From Malacoraja senta (lineage: Eukaryota), in contig CM075998.1 in NCBI GenBank assembly GCA_038087875.1, positions 496,001 to 560,000 of the forward strand: a DNA stretch of 64,000 bases, written 5' to 3'. The position numbers and the translations under genes are program-made. Every line of letters starts with the position of its first letter. Position 1 is the stretch's first letter. Below the pieces are notes generated by a model, which worked only from the letters and a program-made list of their open reading frames with translations, searched no databases and had not been told where the DNA came from. Positions 10,822 to 64,000 of the stretch are shown here, piece after piece.

Positions 10822-11195
10822 CTGACCCCTGTGTCCAAGTGGATGGGAGTCCAAAATGTTGCTTTTTTAAATTTAGCCCCAAAGTCACATTTACAAACGT
10901 GGTGCGAGCTCACCTGTGGGTATACCTGCGACCAGTACTGCACACCTCCACAGTGTACCTGCAAATCCTCAGGCTGAAACCTGTGACGGAAAAAGGCAGC
11001 AGGCACTCGAGGATCCGATCCTTAAAAATAGACATGGACACCCGCAATGGGCGCTGGCAAAGCATCGACTTTAAGCACGTTCTGCAGAACTGGTTCAAGC
11101 AACCGCACACCAACTGGGGCATTGAGATCAACGTCTTTGATATGGATGGGAATGACTTGGCTATTACATCTCCGGGAAGTGGAGAGAAGGGATTG
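10822..11195 (+). CDS. GDF11: GDF11 exon 2 (374 nt, propeptide)
   Basis: Acceptor tttttgtag|CT GAC CCC and donor GGA TTG|gtgagt. Encodes [20 protein letters not shown]...LWVYLRP...[26 protein letters not shown]...GEKGL. Confidence 0.95.
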
Positions 11196-17567: not shown

Positions 17568-17855
17568 GTCTCGGATTTTAGCTTTTTTTTCGGTACACTC
17601 TGCTTCTATTTATAAAGCCTAAAATTCCATAGACCTCGTCGCTGCCACAGTTCATCCCTTTCCACATAGCCAAATGATAAAAACATCAATAAGTTTGCAC
17701 CATGATCAGTGAAAGATCACAATGTCACAGAAGGAAGTGCTGGTGCATTTGCTGATTCTGCCAAAGTCTGCGCTAAGTATGCACTGTGCTCCCTAAGTGC
17801 ATCTGTCCAAAAAAAAGTAAACGTGCAGAAGTTAACTGGTTAAATTAAAGGCACA

Positions 17856-32697: not shown

Positions 32698-32739
32698 TCA
32701 GACAATCCCAAAACGTTCTGCTCTTTTCCTCTTCTTTGC
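32698..32739 (-). CDS. SARNP: SARNP exon 11 coding part (AKKRKRAERFGIV*)
   Basis: ttttttcccag|GCA AAG ... GTC TGA. Confidence 0.95.
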   Translation of the reverse strand, partial: AKKRKRAERFGIV

Positions 32740-35700: not shown

Positions 35701-38700
35701 ACTCCAAAGACGTACAGGTTTGTAAGTTAATTGGCTTGGTGAACGTAAAAATTGTCCCCAGTGTGTGTAGGATAGTGTTAATTTGCAGGGATCGCTGGTC
35801 GGCGCGGATCCGGTGGGCCTGTTTCCACGCTGTATCTCTAAACTAAACTAAAATCTAAAAAAATGTTTAAATGGTGCTGGACAAATTTGAAAAATTGAAA
35901 ACCCCATAATAGTCTTAGAGTGATACAGTATGGAAACAGGCCCTTTGGCCCAACTCACCCAACAATGTCCCAGCTACACTATTCCCACTTGCCTGCGCTT
36001 CGTCCATAACCCTCCAAACCTGTCCTATCCATGCACCTGTCTAATTGTTTCTTAAACGATGGGATAGTACCAGCCTCAACTACCTCCTCTGGCAGCTTGT
36101 TCCATACACCCACCAACCACCCTTTGTGTGAAAAAGTTACCCCTCGAATTCCTATTAAATCTTTTCCCCTTCACCTTGAACCTATGACCTCTGGTCCTCG
36201 ATTCCCCTACTCCAGGCAAAAGACTCTGTGCATCTACCCGATCTATTCCTCTCATGATCTTATACACCTCCAAAAGATCACCCCTTATCCTCCTGTGCTC
36301 CATGGAATAGAGACCCAGCCTGCTGAATCTCTCCCTATAGCTCACATCCTTTAGTCCTGACTACATCCTCGTAAGTCTTTTCTGACCCCTTTCAAGTTTG
36401 ACAATATCTTTCCTGGAACATGGTGCCCAGAACGGAACACAATATTCTAAATGCGGTCTCACCAACGTCTTATACAACTGCAACATGACCTCCCAACTTC
36501 TATACTCAATACTCTGACTGATGAAGGCTAAAGTGCCAAAAGCCTTTTTGACCACCTTATCTACCTGCGACTCGACCTTCAAGGAACCATGCACCTGTAC
36601 TCCTAGATCCCTCTGCTCTACAACACTACCCAGAGGCCTACCATTTACTGTGTAGGTCCTGCCCTGGTTCGACTTCCCAAAATGAAACACCTCACACTTC
36701 TCTGTATTAAATTCCATCAACCATTCCTCCGCTCACCTGGCCAATCGATCCAGATCCTGCTGCAATCGTTCACAACCATCTTCACTATCTGCAAAACCGC
36801 TAACTTTTGTATCATCAGCAAACTTGCTAATCTTGCCCTGTATGTTCTCATCCAAATCGTTGATGTAGATGACAAACAGTAACGGGCCCAGCACTGAACC
36901 CCGAGACATACCATTAATCACAGCCATCCAGTCTGAGAAGCAACCTTCCACCATTACCCTCTGCTTCCTTCCATGGAGCCAATTTGCTATCCATTCAGCT
37001 ATCTCTCCTCGGATCCCATGCAATCTATCCAGAGCAGCCGACCATACGGAACCTTGTCGAACACCTTACTGAACATGTGGACCCTCTCCGTCCCTATCCA
37101 TAACTATCTTAAACCTAATCCAACTGTGGTCACTGGTCCCGAAAGGCTCCTCCACACACACTTCATTAACTTGCCCTTCCCAATTTCCCAATACTAGATC
37201 CAGTGTTGCCCTCTCACGTGTGGGGGCCTCCACATACTGCTTAAGAAAACTCTCCTGAACACTTTTGAAGAATTGCACCCCATCTGAACCCTTCACGCTA
37301 TGATTTTCACAGTCGATATTAGGAAAGTTAAAATCCCCCACTACAACAACCTTATTTGACCTGCAGCTGTCTGCAATCTCCCGGCACATTTGTTCTTCCA
37401 ATTCCCGTTGACTATTCAGGGGTCTGTAATACACCCCCAACAAAGTGATCATCCCTTTTTTGTTCCTCAGCTCCACCCAAATAGCCTCACTAGACGAATC
37501 GTCCGTAATGTCACCTCTGAACACAGCCGTGACATCCTCCTTAACCAACAATGCAACCCCCCCCCCTCCTGTTTTTCCCTCGCCCTGTCTCTCCTGAAGC
37601 TCCTGTACCCCGGAACATTGAGCTGCCAGTCCTGCCCCTCCCTTAACCGGGTTTCAGTCATGGCTACAACGTCCCAGTCGCTCGTACCTATCCACGCCCT
37701 AAGCTCATCTGCCTTGCCCGTCAGGCCCCTTGCATTAAAATACGTGCAGTTTAAACCACCCCTCCTTCCTCGCTCTCTGCCTTTCACCTGTCTATTCTGT
37801 CCACTAACCTTTCCCTCACCACCCTCCATACCAACTTTTAGCCTCTCACATGCCTCTGTCCTGCACGAGATCCCACCCCCCTGACAATCTAGTTTAACCC
37901 TTCCCGTGTAGCATTCGTGAACCTTCCCGCTAGGATGTTGGTCCCCCTCCAGTTTAGGTGCAATCCGTCCCTTTTATACAGGTCACCCCTGCCCCAGAAG
38001 AGATCCCAATAATCCAGAAATCTGAATCCCTGCCCCCTGCACCAACTCCTCAGCCACATATTCATATCCCCAATCTTCCTAATCTTACCTTCACTAGCAC
38101 GAGGTACTGGAAGCAATCCTGAGATCACTACCCTGCAGGTCCTGCATTTCCGTCTTCTACCCAATTCCGTAAATTCTTGTTGCAGAACCTCCTTCCTCTT
38201 CCGACCTATATCATTTGTGCCAACATGCACAACAACCTCCGGCTGCTCCCCCTCACTCTTGAAGATGCCGTGCAGCCGCTCCGAGACGTCCTGGACCTTG
38301 GCACCAGGGAGGCAACACACTATCCTGGAGTCTCGCCTGTTGCCGCAGAATCTCCTGTCAGCACCTCTGTCGATGGAGTCTCCCACCACTATGGCTCTGC
38401 CTGACGTCACTTCCCCGTTGAGCCTTGGCACCAGGGTTGGAATCACAGCCCTGGCTACCACTCAATCTTGTCATGTCATCTGCTCCAAAGAGGGTGGGCC
38501 TGTTTTCAGTATGTACAGCCAACGGGGTCTCCTACAATCCACTTTTATTGCTCTTTCTCAGTCACCCATCTTCACACTTCCTGTATCCTTGGTGTGACAA
38601 TCTCACTGTAGGTTTTGTCCAGGAAACTCTCATTTCCCCGGACAAGACAACTAGTACAGGAGGATTCAACGTAATCTCTTTCCCTTTTGAAACTTCAAAT

Positions 38701-39021
38701 GTTTACACAACATCAGATGACAAGAAGTTTGACAGGAGAACAGAGCAGCTTTAGCTACATTAAAGCTGGAGTTGCCATTGCACAAAGTGGTGTAAAGTTG
38801 TTATTTACAAAAAAGTCACAAAAACTGAATTTGAAAAGCAGCTTCTCAAACAGGAACAAAGTTTTTACACCAAATAAATTCTTCCGCACTGTTGGTCGAA
38901 CCACACTGGTGATAAAGAATTTACTTTGTGGCAATGTAAACTTCTTTTCTTGTACTTGCTTCCATCAATGCAACTTACACTGAGAAACTAAAGGCCCATG
39001 TAACACAGAGGGCCATTGGAG

Positions 39022-39053
<32 letters not shown>

Positions 39054-42000
39054 AAATTATAAAGCAACCTAAATTTAATTGACTAGCATCCCCCAAGAAA
39101 AACAACTTGCATAAAGCAAATCCTTGTCAAGTTGCAAGCAATGACAACAAAGCTCTGAAGGTGGGAATATGGATCACGGCAGCAGGACAAATTCGAAGTG
39201 CTGAAGTAACTCAGTAGGTCAAGCAGCATCCCTGGACAATGTGGTGAGTCAGGAAACTTCTTCAGACTGATCTAGAGGGGCAAAAGAATGCAAGGAAAGA
39301 AATTCTCTCCAACCCTACTAAAAAAAAAAATCAGTGTGCAGAAGGGTCCTGACCCAAAATATCACCCATCCATGTTCTCCGGCGATGCTACCTGACCTGC
39401 TGAATTACTCCAGCACTTTGTACCTATCCATGTTCTCCAGAGATGCTGCCTGTCCCGCTGAGTTACTCAAGCACTTTCTTTTATTGTAAACCAGCATCTG
39501 CAGTTCCTTCTTTCTACATTCAAATTGCCCTGACGCATGTAGTGAACTCAACATTGCAAATTAGTCTTTAAACACCAAGGAAATGACACTTAAAACAAAT
39601 AATTTGAACGTCTGACTAACATAAGGAACATTCGGAAATTACAAGTCACAAAATAGCTCCAAAGTATATTTTAGTACATCTTGAGAGAAGCACTCGGATT
39701 CAATTTGCAGCGTAAATAAAAACAGAACAAAGCAATTGAGTGAAAAATAAAACATAAAAAGTCATAAGAAGAAAGGAGAGAAAACAAAATCACAGTCAGC
39801 CTCTCTTGCAGTTGAAGTCCATTTTCTCCACATTCAAATACTAGGATTGTTTTTTTGGAGAATGCACCTTGGATGCAGACAAATAAAGAGAACATTTTAA
39901 TATTACTGGATTGCCAGAGTTTACCGATCACTTTCGAAACTACACAAATTTATTTTTAACGTGTTCAGCATCTCATGGAAGCTGACACCTCAGGGTATCA
40001 CAGGAAGACATTAAGAAAAATGTGACAGTTCCATGAGGAAAGGATCTTTTTCATTTCAAAATTACTTGAGGAGGAATTTAAAAGGCCGGAGGGAAAGCAG
40101 GACTGTACACACACACACACACACACACCTAGCTTTGATGGCCAGGTTTTGTTCATTGGCTTAGATAGTGCAATCCCTGGCCCCTCAGGTTTGCATTGTA
40201 AGCTGTTACCATTGTGCTATGGAGTGGGATGAAGCAGATCGATACAGTGCTGTGGACAGACAAAGAGACGGTGCACACATCAATCACAATCAGTCCCTTC
40301 GCACAGCAAGCGGCCAATGACAATGACAACTTCACTGGGCTACAATTTTTGTAGCTGCCAGTCGTGTTCATCCTGCTGTCAACACTCATTACACCAACTA
40401 GCGTGGTTTGACGGAGGGCGCCACAAGAGCTCAGGAGGGGGTAGAAAGAACATATTGTTGCCTTAAGTGGCTCGCACAAGCAGTACTCTTAACACAAAGC
40501 CAAATTGTTTGCGGACTCAAGGCAGCAAAAAACGCAGGTGACAGATGGAGCCCATTGAAGTGTGCTGCATAATAAAAGTTTACATTCACTGCATGCACGA
40601 AATGGAATGATGGCTGAAATATGTGTAGTTTCAAAAGTAATGGCAACGTGGATATTTAATGCAGAGAAGTGTGGTTTCAGTATAAAGCAAGCGGGTCATT
40701 ATCTCACAACATGCTGCAAGGAGTCTAAATAGGGACAAAATTTCAAACACCTTATGATAATTAAACCTTTAAACTTGGTTGGAAAAAAGACAGTAGGTGT
40801 TAAACAATTAGCCAGTCTGGCAAAGACAGGCGATTTCCAACCTACAAGCCAGATTTGTCCATCCCCTCCTTTCTGCCATACATCAAATCAACATTACTCA
40901 TCACACTCAACTAGCAATACCACAACCAGCACTTTGCAAAATGCACAACATTAGGTGTAATATATATTTTCTGAGGTATTATTTATATATTTTGGTCACT
41001 GGAAACCTTCAAACAAATATTGTAACTGTAAGGTGCATCAGCAACAGTTGGAAACGCTAATTAGATTCCAATAGAACAACAGACTCGGGTTCGCAACGAG
41101 TAATTGGACGGAACAGTCAACACGTCTCCAATTATTAAATGGAACAGAGGGGATTGACAAATTCAGTTACTGTTTTGCGTTGCAACAACATTATAACACA
41201 AAGGTTCACTACTCATTTATTCTCTCATTAGGTTTGTACAGCTTGAACAATACATTATATAATGAATGGTTTCAGTAACACAAATAACATCAATATCCGG
41301 GAATGATTTCATAAGTGTATCCCATGACCCAGGAACACTTATCTGTAGCGAACACATTCAAAATTCCCTCAAAGCTCATCAAGACAAACACATGTAATCA
41401 AAAGTCTCATGTAATCAAAAGTCTATTAGCCAGAACCTCCACTACAATTCTTCATAATCAATGTGCACAAATGCCATTAAAATAATAAATGGAATTTAAA
41501 TCCTGTTAAGGTGCGCCATTTCTTTGTAAGTAATGTTTTTAAGTTGCCTTCTCAGTGACTGCTGAAGGGGGCCTATCCCCTCCTCTTAGTTTGAAAGCTG
41601 TTCATAAGAAAGCAATATGAAAAGGAGGAAAAGCGAACAAAATTTGGAAATTAAGCCTATCTGTTTAAAACAATTGCAACTCAACCATTTCCCAGCCCTC
41701 GTATGAAAATAAGTTCCAACTAAAAAAACCCAATTTGCATCTTAAATTGAGAGGTGGCACCTACCTTTTTTGAGAGTGACGAAACATTCATACCAAATCT
41801 TTCAGCCCTCTCTCTCAATTTTTCTGCACTGATCTGAAAATTAAGAGTCATCTCTCAGAATATTTAAGTTTGATGTATTGCAGTCTAGCTAAATTGTACT
41901 TCTCCCTCCCAATATGGTCAGAATAACGCCTGCTTTCACCACCTATAATACACTAACATGCACCTTTAAAAGGAGGGTTAATAAAGTGTATGGCCACATA

Positions 42001-45000
42001 TCGTGGGACAATAAAAAAAAATGATATTCATAAGCCAGACATTGAAGCATGGAGATGAAAAACAATGGTTATGCTGTGCCTTGAATGTGGATGATCTTAC
42101 AATGGATTGCACAGGAACGCACACAAAATTTGAGATCAAGAGATATTGGTTGGAAAAGATTAAATACAGGAGATGAAACAAGGATGAAAAACCTGAGAGG
42201 CCTATAAGATCAATTTGAAATAGATATTGGAATTCATATGACTGTAAATAATGTGCTTTTACAAATACATATAAATTCATATACTCATAAAGGTCAATTC
42301 AGGTTAGAGCATTGTTGCATATGATGGACTCCACCTTTAGACCACAGGTTGCAAGCTATTCCAAATGGAAGCCATTTTAAACACTGGACAATGTTCTTTC
42401 CAACTTTAGTTCCAGCAAATCAAAAGACTTTAAAACCAAAAACAATTTATTTGTTACCATATTTGATTCCTGCTTGAGCACAAAGTTTGGAGGGAATAGA
42501 TTAACAATTACTCAAAAATGCTGATGCAGAACAGATGAGATACAGGACTGATGGGAAGTATATTCATAAACTTACCACAGTTTTAGTATTTCCAGCAGTA
42601 CCTGAAAAAGAAAAATTACCCAATTTTACACATCAGCTTGGGCAACATTTTAAGGCATGAGAACAGTAAAGACATGCTCAAACATTGACTAGATTACTGT
42701 ATGGTCATGTCTTTAATGGCCTTGTGTAGCATTGACACTAAGTACTGCATTGCATAGATTAAGTATGCTGGAATAATATGGGATATTATAATTTAAATTG
42801 CAACAGCAAGAAAAACAATTTAATGCACATCCAACAGAAAGATTTTTTTTAAATCTTGATACAAATAATCTCTTTTGTTGGATATATTGAGAAGGGAAAA
42901 ATGTGCATTATACATATTAGTTATTTCTCCTCCACAAGTCACTGACATTGTTATTTTAAATACACTGACACCAAGTTTACTAAGTTTGGGGGAGGTTGGA
43001 TGCTCTTGGTTTTCTTTCTCAGGTGAATTCTAAGTTTAATAGCATCTACAATTTGGGGAACACTGTGATTTTGTTCTTACCTTTTGTTGCAATAGGTAGC
43101 CCAAATCTGTTGTAGAAATAAAGAAAATGGTTAGATTCTCAGAATAGAAAAAGGTACTGTAGGTTAGAATCAGCTTGCTCCAAAAGGCCATTTTGGGGAA
43201 AAACACAGCAGATTGCTGCATCAATGCTGCCATCTGCTGGACAGTATTTTAATTCAAATAGTTGGATTGGTTTGGACAAATCAGAATCAAAACAGCACAG
43301 GAGGCAGCAATTCATGAAGAGCAAGGTCATTTATCTTATTCCCCAGTTCCTTCCCCAAAGCTCTGAAAAGAATTCTGCCTTTTCCTATCCAATTCCATTT
43401 TTATAGCCCAGATTGACTATTCTATGTCGATGACAGCAGGGAACAGCTTCGCCGTCGTTACACGATTGAACAGATCTCTCGTACTAGGGAAACTCCTGAT
43501 CTTCAAATCGATTGCGATGTGGCCCTTGCGCTTTTTTCCCATTTATCTGTATTTTCTCTGTGGCTGTCACACCAGATTCTGCACGTTGTTAATTAATTGG
43601 ATGGTATACAAGAGTTTTTCACTGCATCTTGCTACACAAACCAGGACCAATTCCAGCACCCGAACATGTGGCGAGTTCCACAGCATAACCATTCTGCATT
43701 AAAATGTTTCCACCCCACTCATTGACCCTTTTGCCCAAAGTTTAAAATCATGTGTCCTGGTCCTTGGAGCAACTACTAGTGAGTACACTCTCCCTCTACT
43801 TACACTATCTAAACAGTTTTGTACACTGATTAAATCCCTTGACCGTCACAGCTTCTCCAATCTAACCTGGTAGCTGAAATACCTCTATCCTGGTATACAT
43901 TCTCATTTTCTTAAGCTTCAGCTCCCAAATGCTGTCCAAGTGATATTCTCTGTGCTAACTATATTAATTCTTAGCCTCTTCTAATAAATTATTTAAAATG
44001 GCATATTGCCTAAATATCATATTCATTTACACTTCTATTTATGTTGCTGACGGTAATTATCTATGCAAAACTGGAGAATGAAGAACTGGAGTTAAGAACG
44101 ATAGCAGATACAAGTAAATGTGATAATAGATATTCAAGTAAGCAGGTATGTTTACCATTGCTGCTCACCAATGAACGAGACAATATCTATATAATTGCTC
44201 ACATCACCCTTGCATGGTGCTCTCTGTATTGGTTACATATGCACAACATATGACAACAGTTCAACTGCCAATACGATTGATGTTTTTTTTTTTTAATCCC
44301 CTAAGACAAGATCAACACTTGAGTCTTAAGGTTGGAATGTATTTGCAAATCTTAATTTTATGCAATAGTTATTACCGTGCAGCGCGAGCAGCTTTCTTAC
44401 TCTCAGCTGTCCCTGGCACATTGAAGCGCTCTGCTCTTTTCTTTAGCCTCTGTATGTAGAGAAGAAAAAGATTAAATAACATCAAGTTCTTTGAGAGCAA
44501 AATAAAGAAATTATGGGGGTAAAATAATCCTAAATACAATACAGTAACTCCAAGTGTATGGAGTACAAATGTAATTTTAAACAGAATAAGTAGTCAAGAT
44601 TAGGCCAAAACAATTGCCATTGTTGCTGTCATTTTCCCTCCAGGTTGAGATCACCCAAGGGTCACAATCGAGTTACACAATGGCACTTAAAAACCAGACA
44701 CAAGCTTCAATCCAAGACTTTCCAACTACTTACAGAACAGAGAGTACCCAATATCAAACTCCAATATCACCCATTATTATATTTAAATAAGCTTGAGGGA
44801 AGGCCTCTGATGATGGTATTCAGATATTCACCTGGAACAGTCGCCACTTATCAGACAGTAATTTATATTGACCAAACCTCATTCAACACTGATGGTTATA
44901 GCATCTTAAATGCTCCATTTTACTTTGGGTAGAAACAATTGTACTCACCTACCTGCAACATAGTGCACAGGAAATTGACAAACTTACGAATTCTTTGCAT

Positions 45001-51000: not shown

Positions 51001-52967
51001 GGGATGCCATAACTTTTGAATTCATTAGCTTAAAAACCTTAAAGACCATTTCTAATCATTCTTGACTCAAAAATCATGAATTTGCTTGTTTGTTTCCCAC
51101 TGTGTACTCATTATCCAAGCAATCCTTAAAAAAACGACTTACACAAAATATAGCACCAAATGTTTATCAGAGAATCTGACTTGAGAACATTGTGGAAAGG
51201 ATAATTGGATATATGGGCTACATTTAAAGAGATTTTTTTAAATACATAAGTAAGCATATGCTTAAAGAAACTGGAACAAAATTACACTGAAGGCAAAACC
51301 ATTAAATCATGAGTTTTCAAACATAAATTAGTGACAGGAAGAAATCATATGATAGCATAACTTGGAAGGGTACAGATTGAGCAGTTTGATCAACTACTGC
51401 TAATGCTGTCACCTTTTATAGCGATCAAAAAGTGTATGATTTAGAATTAATTTAGATTAACACTTAACAACTCAATGGACGTTGTTTGCAAGTTCAATGT
51501 CTGGTTAACGAGAAATAATTCACAATCTGCCATTAGTACATACTAGATTAAATTATAAATGTTGAACAAACTTTATAACGTGGGGTATATGTAGTATAAA
51601 TAGTAATTAAAATATTACCATGCTCTTCCAGGTAAGCCTGCAGTCTCTGGATGAGATCCTGCTTGTTTCCTTTAGAATCTAGTCCTCTCGAAACACATTC
51701 TTGTCTCAGTTCAGTCAACTAAAATAACGTGAAAACAAAGGTTGGAATTGTGGAGGCTTAGATTCATCCAGTCATCCTACTGTTTCCCCATAACATTGTA
51801 TCAAAAAAAATAATCCTATGCCCTCGTTATACAATAGTTTCTGTCTCAACTACTTTATTTTCAAACTCTGAAGAGCTTAATTTTTCTACCAGAAGTTTAA
51901 AATTGATGAACCTTCAACTCCTCAATTGAAGGAGACAGCATTTGCTACTCACCTCGTTACAGCCTTTTATAATTTAAAATACTTTCCTCTATTCAAAACT
52001 GTATCAGCGTTGCTCCTCACAATTTGAGGATCAATCAGTTATTTGTACCATGCACATTTCCCCTGCTCCTGCCACACCCCCCCACAACATTTTTAAAATG
52101 TTGGCGTATATTATACAGCTTCCAAATTTAGTATATTGCTTCCAAATTTAGGTGGCTGTTACAAGTCAGATTACTGGGTCTGCCATCACATAATAACCTA
52201 GAATGGGTAAGAAATACGATTTTTCTTACTGCAGGCCATTATTATGTTTTCCCCCCTCCCACAAGGCAATTAGATAGATTTCTGATTATTGATACTGAAT
52301 GGTTATTCCAGATTTATTGAATTACTTGAATTTAAATCTCCCAGCCGCTACGGTGGGATGAATTCATGTCACGGGATCAATGTTCCAGGTCTCTGGATGC
52401 AGCTCCAGTAACTTAAACACTATATCTCGACGTGATTCAGATTTTTTTTCTGAAAAAAAAACAAAAAAAAAGCTTATCCATCCACGCCTTCAGGAATTAC
52501 ATCCCATGTGATACGACATGTAACCCATGAGGATACAGGCGTGTACTCGATCCTGGTTCCGATGGTTCATTAATCCACTAGGCCGTGTGGGAGCCATGTG
52601 TTGCTCCTCATCACGACGTTTATGCCGCTTAAAGCGTTGGGGCGGGAGGCAGTAATGGTGGGTGACTTTGAAACAGAAAAATAACCCCATCCTCAGAGCG
52701 ACAGTTGCTGGGAGAGGGGGAAGGGGTGGGAATCGACCGCGGCAAACCTCTCTCTCTCTCTCTCCCCCCCCCCCCCCCGCGCCGTAGCGTCTCCGGGAGG
52801 ACAAGCAAGTAAAAGATGAAGCCTAGCGGCTACTTCGTCTTCTGAATGCAGTCCCTGACTCGCGATCCTCGGCTTATCCTGTCCCCAAAGATTCCCCCGA
52901 ACCTCGCCTGGGTTTCAGCTCCCTGTACCTTCAATTTGCTAATGTCCACCCCCGTCCTGTCCGCCAT
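32698..52967 (-). CDS. SARNP: SAP domain-containing ribonucleoprotein (CIP29/Tho1 homologue), 11 coding exons, 630 nt, 209 aa
   Basis: All 11 exons found by hand with GT-AG borders and consistent phases (39+100+47+71+52+74+26+26+69+84+42=630). N-terminal SAP domain plus five RxxRF(G/N) motifs. Confidence 0.95.
33071..33366. mobile_element. Possible old Tc1/mariner (Tigger-like) MITE
   Basis: Imperfect terminal inverted repeats CCGGCAGTTTCCTGGTTACTAATG and CATTCATTACCTGGGAACAGCCTG. Confidence 0.45.
33973..34056 (-). CDS. SARNP: SARNP exon 10 (TEDDEKMKKRKERFGIVTSSGGGGDDVE)
   Basis: ttcttgtag|ACT ... GAG|gtaatc; 84 nt. Confidence 0.95.
35548..35853 (+). mobile_element. tRNA-derived V-SINE (HE1-like)
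   Basis: GGTGGCGCAGC A box, GGTTCGATCC B box, same core, CR1-like tail ending CTAAACTAAACTAAA. Confidence 0.9.
35910..38640 (-). mobile_element. CR1-clade LINE: ORF1 esterase, AP endonuclease and RT; frameshifted and internally deleted
   Basis: ORF1 VVGDSI/HVGTND/DGLH; endonuclease YFNARGL, TET, GVYYRP, VGDFNFP, LDLVL, SDH; RT GSVLGPLLF, KFADDTK; C-terminal RRIRGDL. Confidence 0.95.
39021..39053. repeat. (TA)n microsatellite
   Basis: Read directly from the sequence. Confidence 0.9.
39185..39520. mobile_element. Degenerate palindromic mini-element with a tandemly duplicated right arm
   Basis: GCTGA(A/G)TTACTC(C/A)AGCACTTT occurs twice; inverted left arm; terminal AAACCAGCATCTGCAGTTCC. Confidence 0.7.
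40107..40128. repeat. (AC)n microsatellite
   Basis: Read directly from the sequence. Confidence 0.9.
41765..41833 (-). CDS. SARNP: SARNP exon 9 (ISAEKLRERAERFGMNVSSLSKK)
   Basis: ttttcag|ATC ... AAG|gtaggt; 69 nt. Confidence 0.95.
42576..42601 (-). CDS. SARNP: SARNP exon 8 microexon (GTAGNTKTV)
   Basis: ctttttcag|GT ACT ... GTG|gtaagt; 26 nt; restores phase 0. Confidence 0.85.
43081..43106 (-). CDS. SARNP: SARNP exon 7 microexon (RFGLPIATK)
   Basis: caacag|A TTT GGG ... AAA G|gtaag; 26 nt; completes RAARFG. Confidence 0.88.
44376..44449 (-). CDS. SARNP: SARNP exon 6 (RLKKRAERFNVPGTAESKKAARAA)
   Basis: atacag|AGG ... CG|gtaat; 74 nt. Confidence 0.95.
45060..46100. repeat. Degenerate 33-37-bp minisatellite (GCCACTGCCCAGTTTAGCGCCATT core) in SARNP intron 5
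   Basis: CCAGTTTAGCRCCATT repeated many times across 45080-45700, decaying toward 46100. Confidence 0.85.
46634..46685 (-). CDS. SARNP: SARNP exon 5 (SAAKKLVKIVGPMTESE)
   Basis: ttttcag|A TCT ... GAG|gtgggt; 52 nt. Confidence 0.9.
47012..47330 (-). mobile_element. CR1 LINE 3' fragment
   Basis: Same tail as the element at 35910 (CAGCATGGAAACAGGCCCTTT...). Confidence 0.75.
47830..47900 (-). CDS. SARNP: SARNP exon 4 (EEEQQQKAEPEVEGQTVAAKEPE)
   Basis: acacag|GAA ... GA|gtaaat; 71 nt, phase-compatible acidic linker. Confidence 0.85.
48515..49240 (+). mobile_element. CR1 LINE 3' fragment with a nested antisense CR1 tail (~48760-48912)
   Basis: RMRGDLIEV split by an antisense piece; resumes with TRRHKFTVRGERFNR...NFF. 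Confidence 0.8.
49895..49941 (-). CDS. SARNP: SARNP exon 3 (AEEEVNEEDVLAEDTE)
   Basis: ttgcag|CT ... GAG|gtagat; 47 nt. Confidence 0.93.
51619..51718 (-). CDS. SARNP: SARNP exon 2 (SAP domain, LTELRQECVSRGLDSKGNKQDLIQRLQAYLEEH)
   Basis: ttttag|TTG ... CAT G|gtaat; 100 nt. Confidence 0.95.
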
Positions 52968-53596: not shown

Positions 53597-55349
53597 TTTG
53601 ATGACAATCTGGTAGTTTCACAGTCACTTATTTAATTATTTGCATTTAAATTTGCCATTGTGGGATTCATATTCTTTTCTCTGGATCACTGGTCCAGAAG
53701 TCTGTAACTCATTCACTGTGCACTGTTCACCTCATACTGCTTTGTTTTAATGAGTGGTAAATGGCAAGCAGTCAAACACAAAGGTGAACCTCGGCCTGAA
53801 GCTAGCAGGACAAGGAAATAGTGGTTAAGAAGGTATATGGAATACTTGCATTTAAAAAAAAAAACTCAGGCATATAGCACTGGAGCAGGGAGTTTTTTGT
53901 TACAACTATAACAAGTGAGATCACAGTTAGAGTACAGTGCACAGTTTTGGTTATCAAGTTACTGTTTAGTTTATTATTGTCATGTGTACCAAGTTACAGT
54001 GATAAGCTTGTTTGCTTACTATCCAGTCAAAGAAATGACTATACATGACTACAATCAAGCCGACAACAATGCACAGATAAAGGATAAAGGGAGGATCTGA
54101 TAGCACTAGAGTGCAGAGAAGAGGTATAACAATGTTACCAAGGCAAAAAGCACTGAAGTTATGTCACCAGGGAAAAAGTACTAGGGATTGATTATTTTTT
54201 TGGATCGATGAGAGATTTACTTGAAGTGTATACATTTATAAGTGCCCTGGACAGGGTAAACAGAGAAAAAAAATCCCTTATCAAACAGTTCAGTTACTGG
54301 GGAGCATAGATTTAAGATGAGAAGAAATAGTTTTGTTCAGTGAGTGGTGAGAATTTGGAATTCACTATGTGACAGGATAATGGAGGCACAGACTCTTTCC
54401 ACAAAAATACTTACAAAGGTGAGAACAATAATAGGGCATAATATATTGATGAAAGACAAGGTCTTATCTATTCACAAGGCAATAATCTAATAAACTGTCT
54501 GGCTAAACTGAAAGAATCTTAAAATACAACAACGTATCAAATTCAAAAACCAAAGAGGGGAAACCTAGATCACAACATGGCTGTACAGATGAACACAGCA
54601 CTATCGCCAAAGCTGACCACTGGCTGCAGAAAGGATACTTGATAGTGACATCAATCTTTAATGTAAGTGACCTAATGTTCTGGGATTACCCTTGTTCAAC
54701 CCACCATAAAGGTGAGGTCATCCAAAACTCTGCTCTTATATTCATTGCCCCGATCAATGAAGGCAAGCAAGCATACCATATGGTTTCTTTACCACTCTCT
54801 ATCAACGTGTGTTTCATTCCTTGTATTTAAAGGAGACTTTGGAAATTAAAATATAGTTCCAGCTGTCAATATTATTTGCAGTATTGCAGTCTTTCCAATG
54901 TCTGTTTACTTTGAAAGATTGTCATAATGCCTCAGATGCCCTATTTTACTCATGAGCTGGTATTGATCAGGCCTCTTCAAAAATTGGGGCGTATTTTGTT
55001 AATCTTATTCCAGTTGATTGATGTTTTAGGCATTTATGCTCATCAACAGATAAAGAAAGCAGTGCATGCAGGCTTCAGATAAAAGTCCCACTCCAAGGAA
55101 GCATAATCTCCAAAGGCTCCTGCAAATGTATATATTTAAAATGTAGAAAAATGGGCAGCCAATATTCACACAGCGGACTCCCACAAATAACGAATGATAT
55201 TAAATTGATGTCAATTATTGAACACAATAAATGATGACCCCAGAAAAGTGGGGAGAGCACTCATATTCCTCTTCAATATCACGCCATGGCATGTTAAGTG
55301 AGAAAGGTAACAAGGTAAACCTTCACATCTCCTTTCCACTGGCAAGTGT

Positions 55350-55830
55350 GACGCTAGGGCCCCAGCGCCGCCCGTCACAACATTCCATTAGTCTCACTCA
55401 GCGAACCGCTTTCTCCGCACAGGCACCGCCCCATCCAGTCGTGCGACGCTCCCTCTTTGCCGCCCCTCCCACAGTGCGGCGCTGGAAATATTTTGTCCTT
55501 TTCCTGGAATACTAAGTGGCGGTGTCCCTTTAAAGCACCGTGGTCGCCTTTCCGGAGCTGCTGTGTGGGAGGTTGAGAACCCTTCTATATGGGTGGGCGC
55601 TGTCGACTTTGCCTCCCTCCGCCCCACTGACCCTTGTTAGAAGCGGCGAGGACCAGAGCTGGAGGAAGGTTGACGGCGAAGTGCAGGTAAGTGATAGCAA
55701 ATCGGGATCGAGTGGCTCGCCCACCTTGAGATAGCCGCAAAAGCCTTGCGCAAATCTGCTGTTGGCGAGAAAGGTAGGGAGCGGCCCGGTTTAAGAGGGA
55801 CGCTCTGTCGGCTAGAAGCGCAGGCCGCTG
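55350..55830 (+). promoter_or_regulatory. CpG island: probable INPP1-like promoter and non-coding exon 1 ending at 55686
   Basis: CpG-dense; GC box CCCTCCGCCCC near 55615-55625; consensus donor CAG|GTAAGT at 55686/55687; the first coding exon has its own splice acceptor upstream of the ATG. Confidence 0.65.
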
Positions 55831-57139
55831 TCTATTATTCCTCCAGATGCAACAAAAATAATAGGCAGTCACCGGCACCTCTACTTAAAATCGCTCAATT
55901 GCCCACATCCACTGATACCTTAATACACAAAACCTCGTATCTCAGCCTTGAATATGCTTAGCGACTTACTGTGTCCACGGCCCTCTCGGTGTGTGAAACC
56001 CAGAGATTCCTAACACTCATCATTTCTATGTTAAATGACAAATAACGTGTAGAGGCTGAAGACTCTACACGCTGCTTCCAGAGACAAGCATACAAAAAAA
56101 ACCAGGATAACCCTCCAGGCTCAGAGAATGTCGCAGTTTTGGCGGTGTCATCTTTATGATACGAAGTCTGTTCTCTTTGGTAAAAGTAATAAAATCGTGT
56201 CCGACCCGCTGAGTTACTCCAGCACTTCGTGTTTCTTTTGTAAACCGGCATCTGCAGTTCCTTGTGTCTTCGTGGTATTTTTTTTGTTTTGAGAAGAGCG
56301 GGATGCAAGTTCCTGTCTCCTGAGCAATAATTATCTGCTTCCACAACCGCGAAATAGCCTCATGTTACTAAAAAAACACACATTCTACACAATTAAAACA
56401 GATGAACTGGCCGCATTCACATTACTGTTTGTCGAAACGTACTTCTTTCGCATGGCGGTGACCACACTTGATGTTATGAAAGGATTTGTAAAGTGGTCGG
56501 TCACTAAATGCATTGCTTTTCTTTAAATGTTCAAATACATCACCAAGAATATTGGCAATCAGATTATTTTCTTGCCCCCACATGTAATTCTCCCCTCGGT
56601 AATTAATCTAGTAAATCTACGTTGCATGTAAGTATATCCTCATCCACGATCATGAGCCCTTTATTCTGTCTCAGAATTCCTGATCAAATTGGATCTCTCC
56701 TTGGGCCCTATTAACTGGTCTTGATTTATTCGTAGTTGATCGTCAATTCAGCTTTTCTGTACTCTAATCTAACCCATGAACTTGCAGCATTTGCTCACTG
56801 AAGATCAACCCTAATATCATCACAAAATGTATCGGCAAGGATGAGGCTGTTGTGGTTTGTAAAACTGCCTTCTAGCTTGCATAAGATGAACGGCAACTGT
56901 TGGAGACCTCTTCATGATCATGCCTCTCTCTGGGCAACTAGCCCACCACTGAACAGCAACTCATTGTCTTCCAGCAATCACTGACCTCATTCCCAATCCC
57001 CCAACACCTTCTAGCCTTGTGGTGCCCCAATCTCTCTCGACCTGTTTCTATATCCTGCCTGAGATCCAAGGAAGATTGTCTTGGCAGAGGCACGTGACAC
57101 TGCTGGGATCTTGAGTGAAACACAAAATGGATGGCTACT

Positions 57140-57315
57140 ACAGATGTTTTCAAGAGATAGTTAGATATAGCTCTTGGGTCTAACAGAATCAAGGGGTATG
57201 GGGAGAAAGCAGGAACGGGGTACTGATTTTGGATGATCAGCCATGATCATATTGAATGGCGGTGCTAGCTCGAAGGGCCAAATGGCCTACTCCTGCACGT
57301 ATTTTCTATGTTTAT
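57140..57315 (+). mobile_element. HER1-like CR1 3' tail
   Basis: Close match to 9060-9229. Confidence 0.8.
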
Positions 57316-57324
57316 GGTGGTCGC

Positions 57325-57800
57325 CTCCACACAACGGCAACCCTATGTTCCCAGTCACCTGCCACTTTAATTGTTCATCCCACTCCCATTCTGAGCAGTG
57401 TCTTCAGGCATTAACATTGCTCCAACGATGTCCACTTGAGCAACATCACCTTGCATTTAATCTGAGCACGCTGCACCCCTTGGGATTTAATACTGAGTTA
57501 AAACTAATTACAGGTAGTCACCTTTTCCTATTCAACAGATGTGGCAATATCTCTTTCACTTTGTTTATTTTTTATGCAAATCTGTCTCCAACTATCCGTT
57601 TTTTAAGTAATTGTTCCCTTCACAGCTTTGTTCTGCACTCTATCACACCCATTTCTTCTGTTCACCATCTTTCTATCTCTCTGTAATTTAAAACACATTT
57701 TCTCACTGTTCCAGTTCTTTTGAAGAGTTCTAGACCAGAAATATTGACTGTTTTCCCCTCCATGGATGTTGCTTGACCTGCTGACTGCTTCTAACATTTT
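57325..57800 (+). mobile_element. Penelope 3' fragment
   Basis: PVTCHFNCSSHSH...LEQHHLAFNLSTLHPLGFNTE followed by a decayed terminal repeat. Confidence 0.7.
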
Positions 57801-60800
57801 ATGTATTTGTTAAGCATATCCTTCCTTGGATACAACACTCAAAACTATTATTCCTCACCAAGCCTTGTGCAACTGGAGCCAGGCTTGTAAACCTTTGCTA
57901 CAAAAGGCTGGTACACATCTCTAAACTGAAGTTGTCTCAATAAGCTATATGTCCCATGTCATCGCCTAGATCCTAGCATCTCCTCTAATGGTTATGAATC
58001 TGAGATGGATGGGGGTGATGCCAGCGATTAAGAAAAGGGGATTTTGACAATGTAGCCAGGATACTGCCCAGACCATTGGTCTGACATGTTGCTTAGATCA
58101 ATAAGTAAGAAGCAGGGTTGGAGTTACTGGTATAAAATTTTGTAAGTTCATTGGTCAGGGCAGGTATATTCCTCACCTGAACCTCTAGATACATAGCTAA
58201 TGAAAATGGAATTAAGAGTTAATGATAAATGTACTTTAATAGGGGCAATTTCACGGTTTTAAAGGGAATTGTGGTTATTTTGGAAAGAGAAAATGGTGAC
58301 AATGGCCCAACTATGAAAAAAACTTAAACCTGAGATTAGGGTGCAGTTCCTACATATTCCCGCAGGTAAAATGCAGCTAACAGTGTAGCTCCTTGGATGA
58401 GAATTAATATGAGGCAACTGACAGCTCGCATGTTAATACTGAAATAAACACCAAAACAAATATTGAAAATAAAGAGGGGAGGCAAAAGTCTCAGATGAAC
58501 TGAAGAAAGATTGGCATAGAATGGAGGAATAGAAGGAATTTTACTGAGAACTTTAAGGAAAGGGTAATTTGAAATGCTAAAGGAAAACCAGTTTGCACAT
58601 AGCTAGCTCCCATGATGATGATGTTGGGTAAGTTGGTCTGGATGTAGGGCTAACTCTTAAATATTGCCATGAGATCTTCAACATCCATATGTGACCTGCT
58701 GAGTTACTGCAGCAATTTGTCTTTTTTTTGTAAACCAGCATCTGCAGTTCATTGTGTCTCTAGAGTGGAACCTGAAGCCTGACCCTTCTCACTTAAAAGT
58801 GAGTGTTGGGAAGGTATTCAGATTTGAAATGCATTGCCAGAAAGTGTGAAAAATCAGAAAGCATAATCATTTAAAAAAGCGATGTGCATGAAAGTTTTAA
58901 AATGGAAATGTTCAAAAGTTAGAGGAAAAGATCAGGGTAGTGGGATGAAATGGACTGCTGTTTCAGAGTGGGAGCACAATTAGAATAGTCAAAAGCCTCA
59001 AGCACTTTAAAAATTCTGTTTTATAGACAGGAAACATATTTGGAATGGCCAAGCCTAAAGGCATAAAGCTGAATGCATCAAGCAATGTAAGGCACATACT
59101 GATTAGAGGATAGGTGCATTCCATTCTAATTATAAGGTTGCATGTACGAACACTAGCTGGCCACAGTGTAGAGATTCAGTAAATCCCGTTTACCTTTTGA
59201 ATGTGGGTGTTGCTGATATTCTGGCATTTATCGCCCACCTCAAATTGCCTCGACCGAATGGCTTGTTAAACCACTTCAGAGTACTGTTTGGAATTAATTA
59301 CATTAGTGCACAACAGATTCACATACAGTCCTCCCCTCTGAGCTATGAATCCAGTAACATAACCACTATGCTACTGTTTATTGAAACCATTATTATCAGT
59401 GTACCAAATCTACAATCATGAGCTTTAAACATAAAACAATTTGCCCATTGAGACAAAAAATATTTTGAGGTTGTCTAAGGTTAAAATTGAGTAAATGAGT
59501 ATGCCATTACATCCAACAAATCATTTGCAATGGCTTCCCTTTAAATCAACATTTATATTGCAGATTATTTGGTGAAAACATGGCATTAGCAAATGATTTT
59601 CCTCGCACCAAATTGCCTTTTGTACAGCAAATAAAGTCAATTTACTCAGAGTAACTTGTTTAAAAGAGCAGAGGAAGCAAACTGCTGCAATTTCTCCAGA
59701 AAGATGCAGTGAGTGGAGCACATTTGCATGTCAATTATGTGTGTAAAATAACTATAGGCAAGTACATCTGTGGTCACCAAGCTTGATTGAGAGGAATTAC
59801 TGAATCTCTGCACTTAATACTTCAGCCTGTTTGTGAATCATGCACTGGGATAGTGTTTTGGTTGTAATATTTTTATGTTGAGATTTTCCTGTGTACCTTT
59901 ACCTGTTGTAATGTTGTTTCAGAGAATCACACCATGCAGTTGGAGTAAATGTTATTGTGAAACCTTTCCTGTTGCATTCCAACATAACATCTCTGATATT
60001 TTTATTTCCAAGCCGGCCCACAAAGGTCCTTTACAAGCAGCTGTTTCTGTTGGCTGCAATGCCCTTTTGTAGTATTTTGGTGAACCAGATTTAATAAATT
60101 CTCCACTCCAAAGTATATTTGTTGACCTTTTAGTTTGGGTCTGATCAAATCAGAAGAGAGATGGTTTTGTAGTCAGGAAGTTGCCTGGGTGGGATACTGG
60201 CAGACCCTAAAGGTTTGGGTCTCATGAATTGCCACTTATTTATATATTTAGTATCAATTTAAATTTCCATGATGGATGGAATGGCCTCCTTTGGTTTGAT
60301 TCTCTGAAATGTGGCAAAGTAAATGGGACTTCTAGTGCTAACCGTGTTTGCTAAATGTAATTTTTACCTGAAATGTCTAATGAGCTAATTATGGTACTAC
60401 TGAGAAACACATAGCTGATTAGCAAAAGTACAGAGAACAAAATTCCACCTAGAAAATGAACAAGGATAATTGATGTTTAATGTTACAATGCATTGCAGAT
60501 TAAATCTAGGTGACAAGACTATAATTCATTCAAAGAATTCCTCCTTTAATTGCAATGCTGCAGAGGTGTTCATTGTGGATCACCATTGTTTCCATTGGCT
60601 CCCATTTACTGCATTTGCGACACATCAGGTGCCCCGCCATGTCTCTCTTAATTAAATGATGCACTCATTTTTTCTAAATTATAAAGCTGCACACAATCCA
60701 TCAGAGGAGCTTGCACAGCGAGTCAAAAATCCATTTTTATTGACTATTGGGTTTCTCATGGGAAACCAGAATCAGATAAAATGTGCTTACTTAGAATCCC

Positions 60801-60994
60801 ATTTGGCTAAGACTTAGAACTGGGTGTCCACTGAGAGTAATTTCCGATAGCATAGAAAGCCTTGGTAGACAAGATTAGAGCATGTTGCTCCTTTAATACA
60901 ACGGAGACCTTCCATAAATGAGCAGCCAGCATCACATGCTTCAATAATTGTTTTTTTTTCTCTATAGCAGTGCTTAAAAGATTACATCTCAGCA

Positions 60995-61198
60995 ATGGCT
61001 GGTCTCCTAACTGCGTTGCTCTGTGCTTCTGAGAAATCTGCAAATATAGCGAGGGCTTGCAAACGAGAAGAAGAGCTCTTCCAGCTTCTGATCGAAGAGA
61101 AGAAAGGGCCGGAGAAAAACAAGAAGTTTGTGCAAGACTTCAAGACCCTGGCAGATGTCATCATTCAAGAAGTGATTAAGCATGACCTTGAGAAAAAG
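60995..61198 (+). CDS. INPP1: INPP1-like first coding exon (204 nt CDS)
   Basis: Acceptor tttttctctatag/cag (60967/60970), gcaATGG start, donor AAG|gtactg. Confidence 0.92.
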
Positions 61199-63244
61199 GT
61201 ACTGAGTATGCTCGAAAGGTAGGCTGAGTGAAACACCACACTTGAACCATACCTGGGTTTAAGCAAGAAATCCCTTTTCTGTAATTGGTGATAATCTTAT
61301 CATTTATAAGTCACATAAGCACACGGTGCAAGGCACACTTAAATTCTGTGCTTATTTGATAAGTTTGCTTTGGTGTAGTTAGAAATGGAAACATTATTAT
61401 TCTCCACGATGGAGGGTCAAGGAGTGAGATGCATCCTCAGTGTGCGATAGAAGCACATTATATCTGCCTTGTGGCTGATTCATTAGAATCCTCGGCTGAT
61501 AGTTAATGATTGGTTCTTTCCCACTTTTAAGAGCCAGAAAATATATGAGACCCAAAACGTCACCTATCCATGTTCTGCTGGGATGCTGCCTGACCTGCTG
61601 TTACTCCAGCATTTTGTGTCTTCCCTTGGTAAATCAGCATCTGCTGTTCCTTGTTTCTATACTCTGAAATGTTGATGAGTTCAAGTGAGACATGAATTTT
61701 ATTCGGAAGGATGGGGAAGGGCGAGAGAACATCTGCCCTCAATTGTTGCTCTACTTCACTGGGATCCTGGCTTGGAGAGAATTTGGGTTGGTGTCTTGGA
61801 CAGACTCATGAAGAGGTTTCTTTTAAAATCTGCTGGCTACTGTTTAAATTAACTGTGTAATTTCTTTAGATACTTTAGTTGTCATCTTTCTCTCCCATTA
61901 GTTTCCGGAGCTTGTATCTCACATCGCTGGAGAGGAATCCAATCATTTTGAAAATGGTTTGGGTATGTGACAAGACACTTCTTAAGTTATCTCATGGCAT
62001 GTACAGTGCAGTCAGGTTTTCAGATGTGAGGGAGTTGAAGTAACAAACAGTTAATGCTGAACCAGCTTTGGGTGAATTACTTCATTGGCTGCCATTAACT
62101 GGTCTCCTTCCCACGGATGGGCTCAGTATCTCATTTATCTCCTGAAATAAGGAGACCAAAGTTGTACATGGTACTCTTTTTGACGACCCTGATGAATTAC
62201 AATCCTGTGCTCTTTATTTTCATTACAGGTGAAACAATTATTGTGAAAGTCTGCAAAACAGAACAAGCAACTGCAGAATTAATAAGTAAAGTGCTAGATG
62301 GGAATCTGAAAGCTGCTGGCCTTCTGGCCAAATGCATCCACGAAGATATCCACATTGATGGTCCAGCCTCAGATGAACTAAATATAGACATTCCTATGGA
62401 CACCATAGGAATATGGGTTGATCCTATTGGTAAGTAAAACCTTTAACCATCTTACAAAAATAAATTCTCCCCACCATATGTGTGGATTAAAGTTTTCTGA
62501 AGGTGGGATTCTTTTGACTTTGCTGATCAAGGCAAAGCTAAATCAAGAAGTTGATTGTCTTGGAGGCATCCACACAAGCAGATAGAGATGTTCCCTTCCC
62601 CCATCACCCCAAACCCTTTTGCTTCTTCCTCCAGCAGTTGACCAATGATGATTGGAAAAATAATTACTTTGGAAAGTGATAAAAGTAAAATTCCTTGTGG
62701 GTGTTGTGAGAATTCCCAACATGAATATGTAACTCCAGACTCGGGGCAGTCTAACCCATAGCAGTCCTCTGAAATGGCCCAGCAAACTTTTCAGTTTGAC
62801 CAAATACCACCTAACAGCTGTGGGGTTGTTTGAGAAGGCTCCTCACCCAGCACATCCCCCAAGATGCAATTAGGAATGGGTGATAAATGCTGGTCCTGTC
62901 AGCGACACCTGGATTCTCAGAGAGATGTGAAAGAAAAAGCAAGAAGTACAAATGCTGTGGATTTACTGGGTCTGCACATTTCAATGAACTGAATTAAGTT
63001 GAACTGAATCTTTTTGTCCTTGAAAAAATCTTTGTATATATATTTTAAATCTTCTATGTTTCTGTTTTACAGATTCAACCAATCAGTACATAAAAGGACA
63101 ACTTGAGGAGAAGTACAAATCTGGCATTCACTCAAGTGGTCTGAAATCTGCTACTGTACTCATTGGAGTCTTTGATAGAAACTCAGGACAGCCAATAATG
63201 GGAGTCATTAATGCACCCTTTAACGATGTGGACCCCATCTTAAG
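60995..63244 (+). CDS. INPP1: Inositol polyphosphate 1-phosphatase-like, 3'-partial: join(60995..61198,61902..61962,62229..62429,63073..63244)
   Basis: Resembles INPP1 (SEKSANIARAC..LFQLLIEEKK..DFKTLADV; GEESN; GIWVDPIDST; LIGVFD..G.P.MGVIN.PF). Metal-binding EE and DPIDST motifs of the Li-sensitive inositol monophosphatase superfamily are intact. Orthologue versus paralogue is unresolved. Confidence 0.9.
61902..61962 (+). CDS. INPP1: INPP1-like coding exon 2 (FPELVSHIAGEESNHFENGL)
   Basis: cccattag|TTT ... TTG G|gtatgt; 61 nt. Confidence 0.92.
62229..62429 (+). CDS. INPP1: INPP1-like coding exon 3 (GETIIVKVC...GIWVDPI)
   Basis: ttacag|GT GAA ... ATT G|gtaagt; 201 nt. Confidence 0.93.
63073..63244 (+). 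CDS. INPP1: INPP1-like coding exon 4 (DSTNQYIKG...MGVINAPFNDVDPIL)
   Basis: ttttacag|AT TCA ACC; probable donor TTA AG|gtggag (weak); 172 nt. Confidence 0.85.
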
Positions 63245-63794
63245 GTGGAGTGATTTTCAGTATTTGCAATGAAAGGGTGTCGGTTATCTTCCAATCAAAT
63301 GGGATTTTGAGTAGTCAGAGTCCAATCTAAATACTGCATCCTGAGCAAATAAATGTTAGAAGACGATCAAAATCAGCACCATTTGAAGACAATTGTTCTT
63401 TTCTTTGAGGCCATGCAGAAAACTCTACCCATTTTCTAAAATTCTATAAGATACAAAAGAATAGTTGGCCAAAGGTTCTGCAACAGCACCTCCCAAACCT
63501 GTGATCTCTGCCACCTAGAAATATAATAGTAACAGAACATAGGAACACCACCACCTGCAGGTTGCCCTTCAAATTGCAGACAACCACGACTTGGAAATAG
63601 TTATAATTTAGTTTATTGTCACGGGTACCGAGGTACAGTGAAAAGCTTTTGTTGCGTGCAATCCGGTCAGCAGAAAGACAATACAAGATTACAATAGAGT
63701 CATTTACAGTGAAGGAATAGAGATTTAAGATTGTGGAGCAATTGTAATGTGAGTTTGTAAATCTTCTTATGTGGCCTGGGTTGGGCACTATCGA

Positions 63795-63985
63795 GACCAG
63801 CAACTGCAGATGCTGGTTTACAAAAGTCGACAAAGTGCTGAGGTAATTCAGCGGGTCATGCAGAATCCCTGGAGAACATTGGTGATGTTTAGGGTTGAAA
63901 TCCTTTTTCAGACTGAAATGTCACCTATCCATTTTCTCCAGAGATGCTGCCTGACCTGCTGAGTTATTGCAACACTTTGTGTCAA
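63795..63985. mobile_element. Degenerate palindromic mini-element
   Basis: CTGCAGATGCTGGTTTAC...AAAGTGCTG left arm and inverted GATGCTGCCTGACCTGCTGAGTTA right arm. Confidence 0.65.
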
Positions 63986-64000
63986 CTTGGAAATATATCA

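Follow-up and report, generated by a model that had tools for sequence, protein, structure and literature searches.

The window analysed in this work is a stretch of 64,000 nucleotides from the skate Malacoraja senta (GenBank assembly GCA_038087875.1, contig CM075998.1, positions 496,001 to 560,000 of the forward strand), and positions given below without further specification are counted from its first letter. It consists of vertebrate DNA of about 40% GC, interrupted by one 200-base gap of Ns at 3984-4183, in which three genes could be placed: a gene of the GDF11 type, SARNP and, on the plus strand from approximately 55.4 kb past the window end, a gene of the inositol polyphosphate 1-phosphatase (INPP1) type. 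Exons 1-5 of the six exons of the latter lie within the window and hold codons 1-214 out of 375, with exon 6 coding for amino acids (aa) 215-375. We consider it highly probable that the window contains the 5' four-sevenths of a second, functional INPP1 gene, here named INPP1B; the canonical copy is referred to as INPP1A.

Translations of the window exons matched bovine INPP1 (PDB 1INP) with E=2e-22 over aa 1-68 and E=3e-16 over aa 88-156, and the piece of exon 5 alone was assigned to the Pfam family PF00459 with E=5.5e-4. Tblastn with INPP1 proteins of coelacanth, turtle, bat, starfish and brachiopod showed four collinear coding exons and none further before position 64000. Exons 1-5, all with GT-AG borders, are delimited in the window by four intron-free RNA-seq contigs of a closely related skate. 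The contigs (L004-L007) align to 55481-55686, L007 as far as 55437, and then jump to 60966; the donor of exon 1 reads CAG/GTAAGT at 55686/55687. A donor of exon 5 at 63244, where the first-pass annotation had ended the gene, was rejected on transcript evidence, which puts the end of the exon five bases further, at 63249. The motifs TLADV (D54), GEES (E79/E80) and DPI/DST, on which that annotation had relied, are all present, the last one split by the junction of exons 4 and 5. The same RNA-seq contigs map exon 6 to 13372-14772 of the Amblyraja radiata locus (L001). Since this locus is collinear with window positions 53873-64000 at about 95% nucleotide identity, exon 6 is predicted to start about 330 bases beyond the window end, and the last coding exon would lie about 330-860 bases beyond it. 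The gene had been described as intact; the gene itself, its place and its strand were borne out, while its intactness is not readable from the codons that the window holds. The coordinates of all features are collected in Table 1.

Table 1. Features placed in the 64,000-nucleotide window of M. senta, with the evidence for each.
Feature	Position	Strand	Evidence
CpG island with promoter and first exon of INPP1B	55200..56000	+	CpG observed/expected 0.8-0.9, GC 0.51-0.59
INPP1B exon 1, 5' untranslated region only	~55437..55686, 5' limit approximate	+	RNA-seq contigs
INPP1B exon 2, ATG 60995, aa 1-68, TLADV with D54	60967..61198, coding 60995-61198	+	PDB 1INP E=2e-22, transcripts, splice sites
INPP1B exon 3, aa 69-89, FPELVSHIAGEESNHFENGL, E79 and E80	61902..61962	+	tblastn with turtle/coelacanth proteins, transcripts
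INPP1B exon 4, aa 89-155, ends WVDPI (D153, I155)	62229..62429	+	PDB 7KIO/1INP E=3e-16, tblastn, splice sites, transcripts
INPP1B exon 5, aa 156-214, begins DSTNQYIKG (D156, S157, T158); last in window	63073..63249	+	tblastn, splice sites, transcripts
SARNP exon 1, coding part, MADRTGVDISKLK, ATG 52966	52928..52966	-	read from sequence; in frame into exon 2; in CpG island
SARNP exon 2, SAP-domain part, LTELRQECVSRGLDSKGNKQDLIQRLQAYLEEH	51620..51718	-	motif scan
SARNP 3' exons, repeated (K/R)ERFG motifs near 44.4, 41.8, 34.0 and 32.7 kb; last ends protein	32700..44440	-	motif scan
GDF11-type gene exon 2, propeptide, limits approximate	10839..11180	+	Pfam TGFb_propeptide E=1e-10; PDB pro-GDF8 E=5e-41
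GDF11-type gene exon 3, mature-ligand part and stop codon	15006..15335	+	human GDF11 (PDB 5E4G) 101/109; Pfam TGF_beta E=5e-30

The residues of bovine INPP1 that bind metal or lithium and substrate are D54, E79, E80, D153, I155, D156, S157, T158, D317, E269, G290, A291 and K294, among which D54 belongs to metal site 3 and the lithium site, D317 to metal site 1, and E269, G290, A291 and K294 are ligands of the 4-phosphate (PMC7948987). Eight of these 13 (D54, E79, E80, D153, I155, D156, S157 and T158) are conserved in the window under the same numbering. The other five are coded by the last exon, beyond the window, and are conserved in the A. radiata orthologue within SSSEKK, SGAGYK and KWDTCA, so that this orthologue carries all 13; its aa 1-372 align to bovine INPP1 with E=9e-122 and its precomputed Pfam family is PF00459. 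Judging from these residues, the 375-aa product would be a Mg2+-dependent, Li+-inhibited phosphomonoesterase. It would remove the 1-phosphate of Ins(1,4)P2 and Ins(1,3,4)P3 by the three-metal mechanism described for the bovine enzyme, which is predicted because all metal ligands and all 4-phosphate ligands are conserved in the window or, where coded by the last exon, in the A. radiata orthologue.

Comparison of the four coding exons with the transcript of a sister species gave nine synonymous and four non-synonymous differences, a ratio of non-synonymous to synonymous change (pN/pS) of 0.125, and full-length spliced INPP1B transcripts are present in 24 RNA-seq assemblies of close relatives. 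From the low pN/pS and the spliced full-length transcripts we conclude that INPP1B is expressed and constrained by purifying selection. That the gene is a decaying or non-functional copy is very unlikely. Such a reading draws on the fact that just 214 of the 375 codons can be inspected in the window, yet the four coding exons contain neither stops nor frameshifts, their splice sites are all canonical and every catalytic residue is kept when the window and the A. radiata orthologue are taken together. The pN/pS value, the transcripts of close relatives and the short branches across the cartilaginous-fish clade (see below) speak against decay as well.

Orthologues of the window gene are already annotated in other skates. 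Over aa 1-214 the protein of the window gene shares 98% identity with A. radiata XP_032871421, 97.7% with Leucoraja erinacea XP_055520536 and 95% with Rhinoraja longicauda XP_078287625; these RefSeq entries, named INPP1 or INPP1-like, therefore represent the same gene in different species, at 95-98% identity over this part. Identity to the sawfish protein is 91% and to that of catshark 84%. The first-pass annotation had proposed that this is a second INPP1 copy and not the sole one, and the other skates agree with it: besides the 375-aa gene, a separate canonical-type gene lies on another chromosome in A. radiata (XP_032879654), L. erinacea (396 aa, XP_055493743) and R. longicauda (393 aa, XP_078260238). 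In A. radiata the 375-aa gene is situated on an 8.7-Mb chromosome and the other one, of 396 aa, on a 91-Mb chromosome. Identity between the two skate copies is 58%. Both are also present in Narcine, Pristis, Pristiophorus and Acipenser, and when frog INPP1 was used as query, a distinct group of cartilaginous-fish proteins emerged, 395-408 aa in length and sharing 61-62% identity with the frog sequence; its members belong to Callorhinchus, Heptranchias, Heterodontus, Pristiophorus, Narcine and Mobula. RefSeq names are inconsistent, since the 375-aa gene is called INPP1-like in Amblyraja and INPP1 in Leucoraja and Rhinoraja, with the opposite labels on the canonical copy. INPP1B is thus no rarity: it is widespread outside mammals and is already in RefSeq as INPP1 or INPP1-like. 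A literature search within one library of papers returned none describing a second INPP1, the names INPP1A, INPP1B, INPP1L or INPP1-like, or the GDF11/SARNP synteny of INPP1.

Two maximum-likelihood trees were built under LG+C20+F+G4 with starfish, brachiopod, annelid, mollusc and arthropod sequences as outgroups. In both of them the gnathostome sequences form two clades, and in each clade cartilaginous fishes are sister to bony vertebrates. The canonical clade (support 100/98-99) unites chimaera, sharks and rays with sturgeon (400 aa), Amia, tarpon, frogs, axolotl and mammals. The second clade, with support 99/96 in one tree and 91/90 in the other, unites sharks and rays, including the window gene, with another sturgeon protein (375 aa), teleost inpp1, coelacanth, lungfish, caecilians and sauropsids (turtles, alligator, birds, tuatara and squamates). 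The window gene therefore falls outside the canonical INPP1 clade in both trees. Vertebrates are monophyletic in relation to the invertebrate outgroups (98/95 and 91/91), and with cartilaginous and bony vertebrates in both clades the duplication is placed as older than crown gnathostomes and younger than the separation from the invertebrate lineages sampled. Both paralogues have introns after aa 68, 89, 155 and approximately 214, which means that neither is a retrocopy.

These trees also bear on the possibility that the duplication took place only in cartilaginous fishes, and that the bony-vertebrate sequences represent one orthologous gene evolving at differing rates. Identity between the clades (51-58%) is not far under that found within a clade across classes (53-67%), which would fit such a scenario. 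However, when all cartilaginous-fish copies were forced into one clade, the approximately unbiased (AU) test rejected their monophyly (lnL difference 53.8, p=0.0001), although the p-value is weakened somewhat by the tested group having been chosen after the tree was seen. In addition, sturgeon contributes one protein to each clade, the proteins of frog and caecilian are placed in different clades (canonical INPP1 of frog shares 65% identity with opossum INPP1 and 50% with the caecilian protein), and the neighbouring genes differ consistently between the clades. A duplication confined to cartilaginous fishes is for these reasons scarcely credible.

The neighbourhoods of the two copies were compared using immediate neighbours only, which were named from their Pfam content and length. 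In Callorhinchus INPP1A stands head-to-head with a 381-aa ECH_1/ECH_2 protein, taken as HIBCH, and in tarpon an 867-aa MFS_1_like protein, taken as MFSD6-like, is encoded downstream of it. This agrees with human, in which HIBCH-INPP1-MFSD6 stand together near MSTN on 2q32. A mere relocation of single-copy INPP1 in cartilaginous fishes, out of the MSTN-HIBCH region and into that of GDF11-SARNP, would agree with the plain name INPP1 that several RefSeq annotations give to the window gene's orthologues (Leucoraja, Pristis, Hypanus, Scyliorhinus), but the same species carry a second, canonical-type gene, the canonical gene of Callorhinchus is still next to HIBCH, and the window gene and the canonical gene are found in different clades. 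We regard such a translocation as having almost no probability.

INPP1B in the window lies beside SARNP and GDF11, the latter about 40 kb away. The transforming growth factor beta (TGF-beta) gene had been called GDF11, with MSTN as the alternative; by its sequence it is of the GDF11 type, with a mature domain identical to human GDF11 at 101 of 109 positions and scoring 247.8 bits in comparison with 236.7 bits for GDF8. We take the neighbours of the second copy, in the window and in other species, to be genes of human 12q13-q14. In the lizard Podarcis a 330-aa CBS-domain protein (PRKAG1-like) is situated upstream of INPP1B, and in the grouper Plectropomus a 668-aa DnaJ and Jiv90 protein (DNAJC14-like) is tail-to-tail with it. 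A published table for coho salmon places rnf41, dgkaa, dnajc14, inpp1, nr4a1, cs, cnpy2, nab2 and ankrd52a in one 0.54-Mb interval (PMC8102513). The sturgeon locus and the canonical locus of A. radiata had no informative called neighbours. SARNP peptides were looked for within 10 kb on either side at the loci of lizard, grouper, sturgeon and the other species retrieved, and none were found.

In A. radiata and in the caecilian Rhinatrema, INPP1B is overlapped or abutted by a gene model of PAN2. The minus-strand model of A. radiata, of 1202 aa, spans the whole fetched locus (L001:1-23863, reaching 10.8 kb beyond the part collinear with the window), and the INPP1-type gene appears nested in its range. 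As no obvious PAN2 coding open reading frame (ORF) was seen in the 10 kb downstream at this locus, and the caecilian PAN2 starts 481 bases after the end of INPP1B, the skate model may be over-extended.

Taken together, the A and B copies appear to occupy paralogous chromosomal blocks, of the 2q32 and 12q13 type respectively, with the neighbour names and human arms being our own assignments. The two genes would have originated when a whole chromosomal region was duplicated prior to the last common ancestor of jawed vertebrates, with the vertebrate whole-genome duplications as the most likely occasion. INPP1A would then have stayed in the MSTN-HIBCH-MFSD6 block (human 2q32) and INPP1B in the GDF11-SARNP-DNAJC14-PAN2 block (human 12q13), with both copies kept by cartilaginous fishes and sturgeons. 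MSTN and GDF11 offer a parallel, since this old pair of paralogues is likewise divided between the two blocks, with the difference that both are kept in mammals, where one copy of INPP1 was kept. The alternative of an ancient small-scale (segmental) duplication before jawed vertebrates, with the 12q13-type place acquired secondarily, gains something from the sampling, which covers immediate neighbours and is without cyclostomes and invertebrate chordates. It has to accommodate the fact that the copies adjoin members of known paralogous pairs, MSTN/GDF11 among them, and that 2q32-type neighbours (HIBCH, MFSD6) as opposed to 12q13-type ones (SARNP, PAN2, DNAJC14, PRKAG1-like and the salmon block with NAB2, CS and RNF41) recur in five separate lineages, the human arms being presumed. 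We consider it improbable.

The best explanation overall, which we hold with considerable confidence, is that INPP1B is a functional duplicate older than the last common ancestor of jawed vertebrates, most likely from whole-genome duplication, coding for a putative Li+-inhibited 1-phosphatase. The origin proposed in the first-pass annotation, a second INPP1 kept from vertebrate whole-genome duplication, is supported by two copies per skate genome, two gnathostome clades and neighbours of 2q32 as opposed to 12q13 type. Several points nevertheless weigh against this explanation. The presence of canonical INPP1A in M. senta itself is predicted from three other skates, and the enzyme activity and lithium sensitivity of INPP1B are predicted from conserved residues only. 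The last coding exon is outside the window, which leaves 214 of 375 codons for inspection. With the long-branched sequences of teleosts and birds included, support for the B clade goes down to 91/90, and the date of the duplication is a bracket between the split from the sampled invertebrates and crown gnathostomes. Adjacency to SARNP was seen in skates only, the 10-kb flanks of the other loci being too short to reach that gene. Finally, the losses in individual lineages discussed below are suggested by absence among the matches listed and not by genome searches.

Mammalian INPP1 (bovine PDB 1INP/7KIR; human 2q32) and INPP1B belong to the same fold family, PF00459, and share the five-coding-exon structure and intron positions. 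Their metal/lithium motif, D54...E79E80...D153PID156S157T158...D317, and the ligands E269, G290, A291 and K294 are identical, with D317 and these four ligands read from the A. radiata orthologue, at an overall identity of about 52-55%. INPP1B is shorter, with approximately 375 aa in comparison with approximately 400, because it lacks a loop, about 20 residues long, that follows aa 235; this is the main predicted structural difference from the canonical enzyme. Residues typical of the clades are FPEL and DSTNQYI in INPP1B and FPGL and DSTYQYI in canonical INPP1. They differ also in neighbourhood (GDF11/SARNP/PAN2 for INPP1B, HIBCH/MFSD6 for canonical INPP1) and are found in separate gnathostome clades. 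The genes named INPP1 in teleosts, reptiles and birds (Plectropomus, Podarcis, Anolis, Caretta, Rissa) are in the same clade as the window gene, are mostly 375-383 aa long, have neighbours of 12q13 type as INPP1B does, and are 53-60% identical to skate INPP1B. In these groups the second-clade gene is seemingly the sole INPP1, while skates keep the canonical copy too.

The distribution of the two copies over bony vertebrates is uneven. INPP1 of the sampled teleosts, reptiles and birds is in the second clade and that of mammals, frogs and axolotl in the canonical one. Among the matches listed there was no canonical-type sequence from a sauropsid or caecilian, although sharks at 61-62% identity appear there, and likewise no second-clade sequence from a mammal, frog or salamander. 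Only A seems to be left in mammals, frogs and salamanders, and only B in caecilians, reptiles, birds and most teleosts. This split of A-only and B-only lineages between the clades suggests reciprocal loss after both copies had lasted into the stems of amniotes, amphibians and ray-finned fishes. We lean, with moderate confidence, towards hidden paralogy with repeated reciprocal loss, in which both ohnologues reached the amniote, amphibian and ray-finned ancestors and one or the other was then lost, independently, at least four times. The HIBCH-linked copy may then have been kept by mammals, frogs and salamanders, and the GDF11/SARNP-linked one by sauropsids, caecilians and most teleosts.

Seven phosphomonoesterases are inhibited by lithium, among them INPP1, which is a candidate target of lithium therapy. 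If hidden paralogy is true, the gene called INPP1 in chicken, in lizards and in most teleosts (zebrafish probably among them) would not be orthologous to human INPP1. The two enzymes would then be either nearly interchangeable in vivo or different in substrate range or lithium sensitivity, and such differences would be relevant to fish and bird models of lithium action. Statements of INPP1 orthology between human and teleosts, birds or reptiles are probably wrong, and the automatic names in sharks and rays are inconsistent. Species with both copies, such as skates, sharks and sturgeons, permit a direct comparison of the two enzymes, and repeated loss of either one or the other is a natural test of redundancy in the recycling of inositol phosphates. 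INPP1A/INPP1B could also be used as an additional marker pair for the 2q32/12q13 paralogon beside MSTN/GDF11. Since INPP1B represents no new type of enzyme and public annotation already contains it, its value is evolutionary and practical rather than mechanistic.

Among the remaining genes of the window, the one on the minus strand was named SARNP from what we take to be its SAP domain and RAERFG repeats. SARNP and INPP1B are divergent, on the minus and plus strand respectively, with their 5' ends about 2.4 kb apart, and each has its own CpG island, at 52.5-53.1 kb for SARNP and 55.2-56.0 kb for the INPP1-type gene. Separate islands at this distance indicate that there is no single tight bidirectional promoter, and the head-to-head arrangement reported earlier holds for orientation. 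INPP1B would have its promoter in its own CpG island, with transcription directed away from SARNP at a distance of about 2.4 kb. Just within intron 1 of SARNP, and inside its CpG island, a G-run is followed by a GA microsatellite (52720-52790). Another SARNP intron contains long minus-strand ORFs at 36361-38461 with reverse-transcriptase-like and endonuclease-like sequence, which are fragments of long interspersed nuclear elements; related pieces are present in the A. radiata locus.

The GDF11-type gene and SARNP are tail-to-tail, as they are in human. Only exons 2 and 3 of the GDF11-type gene were found in the window, and exon 1 must lie upstream of its start. The absence of ORMDL2 between SARNP and the INPP1-type gene, remarked on in the first reading of this DNA, was matched by a regular-expression scan of both strands of the whole window, which found no ORMDL signature motif and is a weak test, with presumed motifs. 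An ORF at 59197-59421 on the plus strand, whose translation starts with MNVGVA as ORMDL does, was rejected: its first residue comes from a TTG start and it had no Pfam match at E<=1. At 24861-25248 a low-complexity region contains long ORFs, rich in proline and serine on one strand and in glycine, arginine and glutamate on the other, and probably represents a simple repeat instead of a gene. Scanned against Rfam with gathering thresholds, the window in its full length returned no family, the short interspersed repeat copies included. These copies, about 72-87% alike, are located at 9229-9400, 17855-18072 and 63802-63985, and several copies are present in the A. radiata locus as well.

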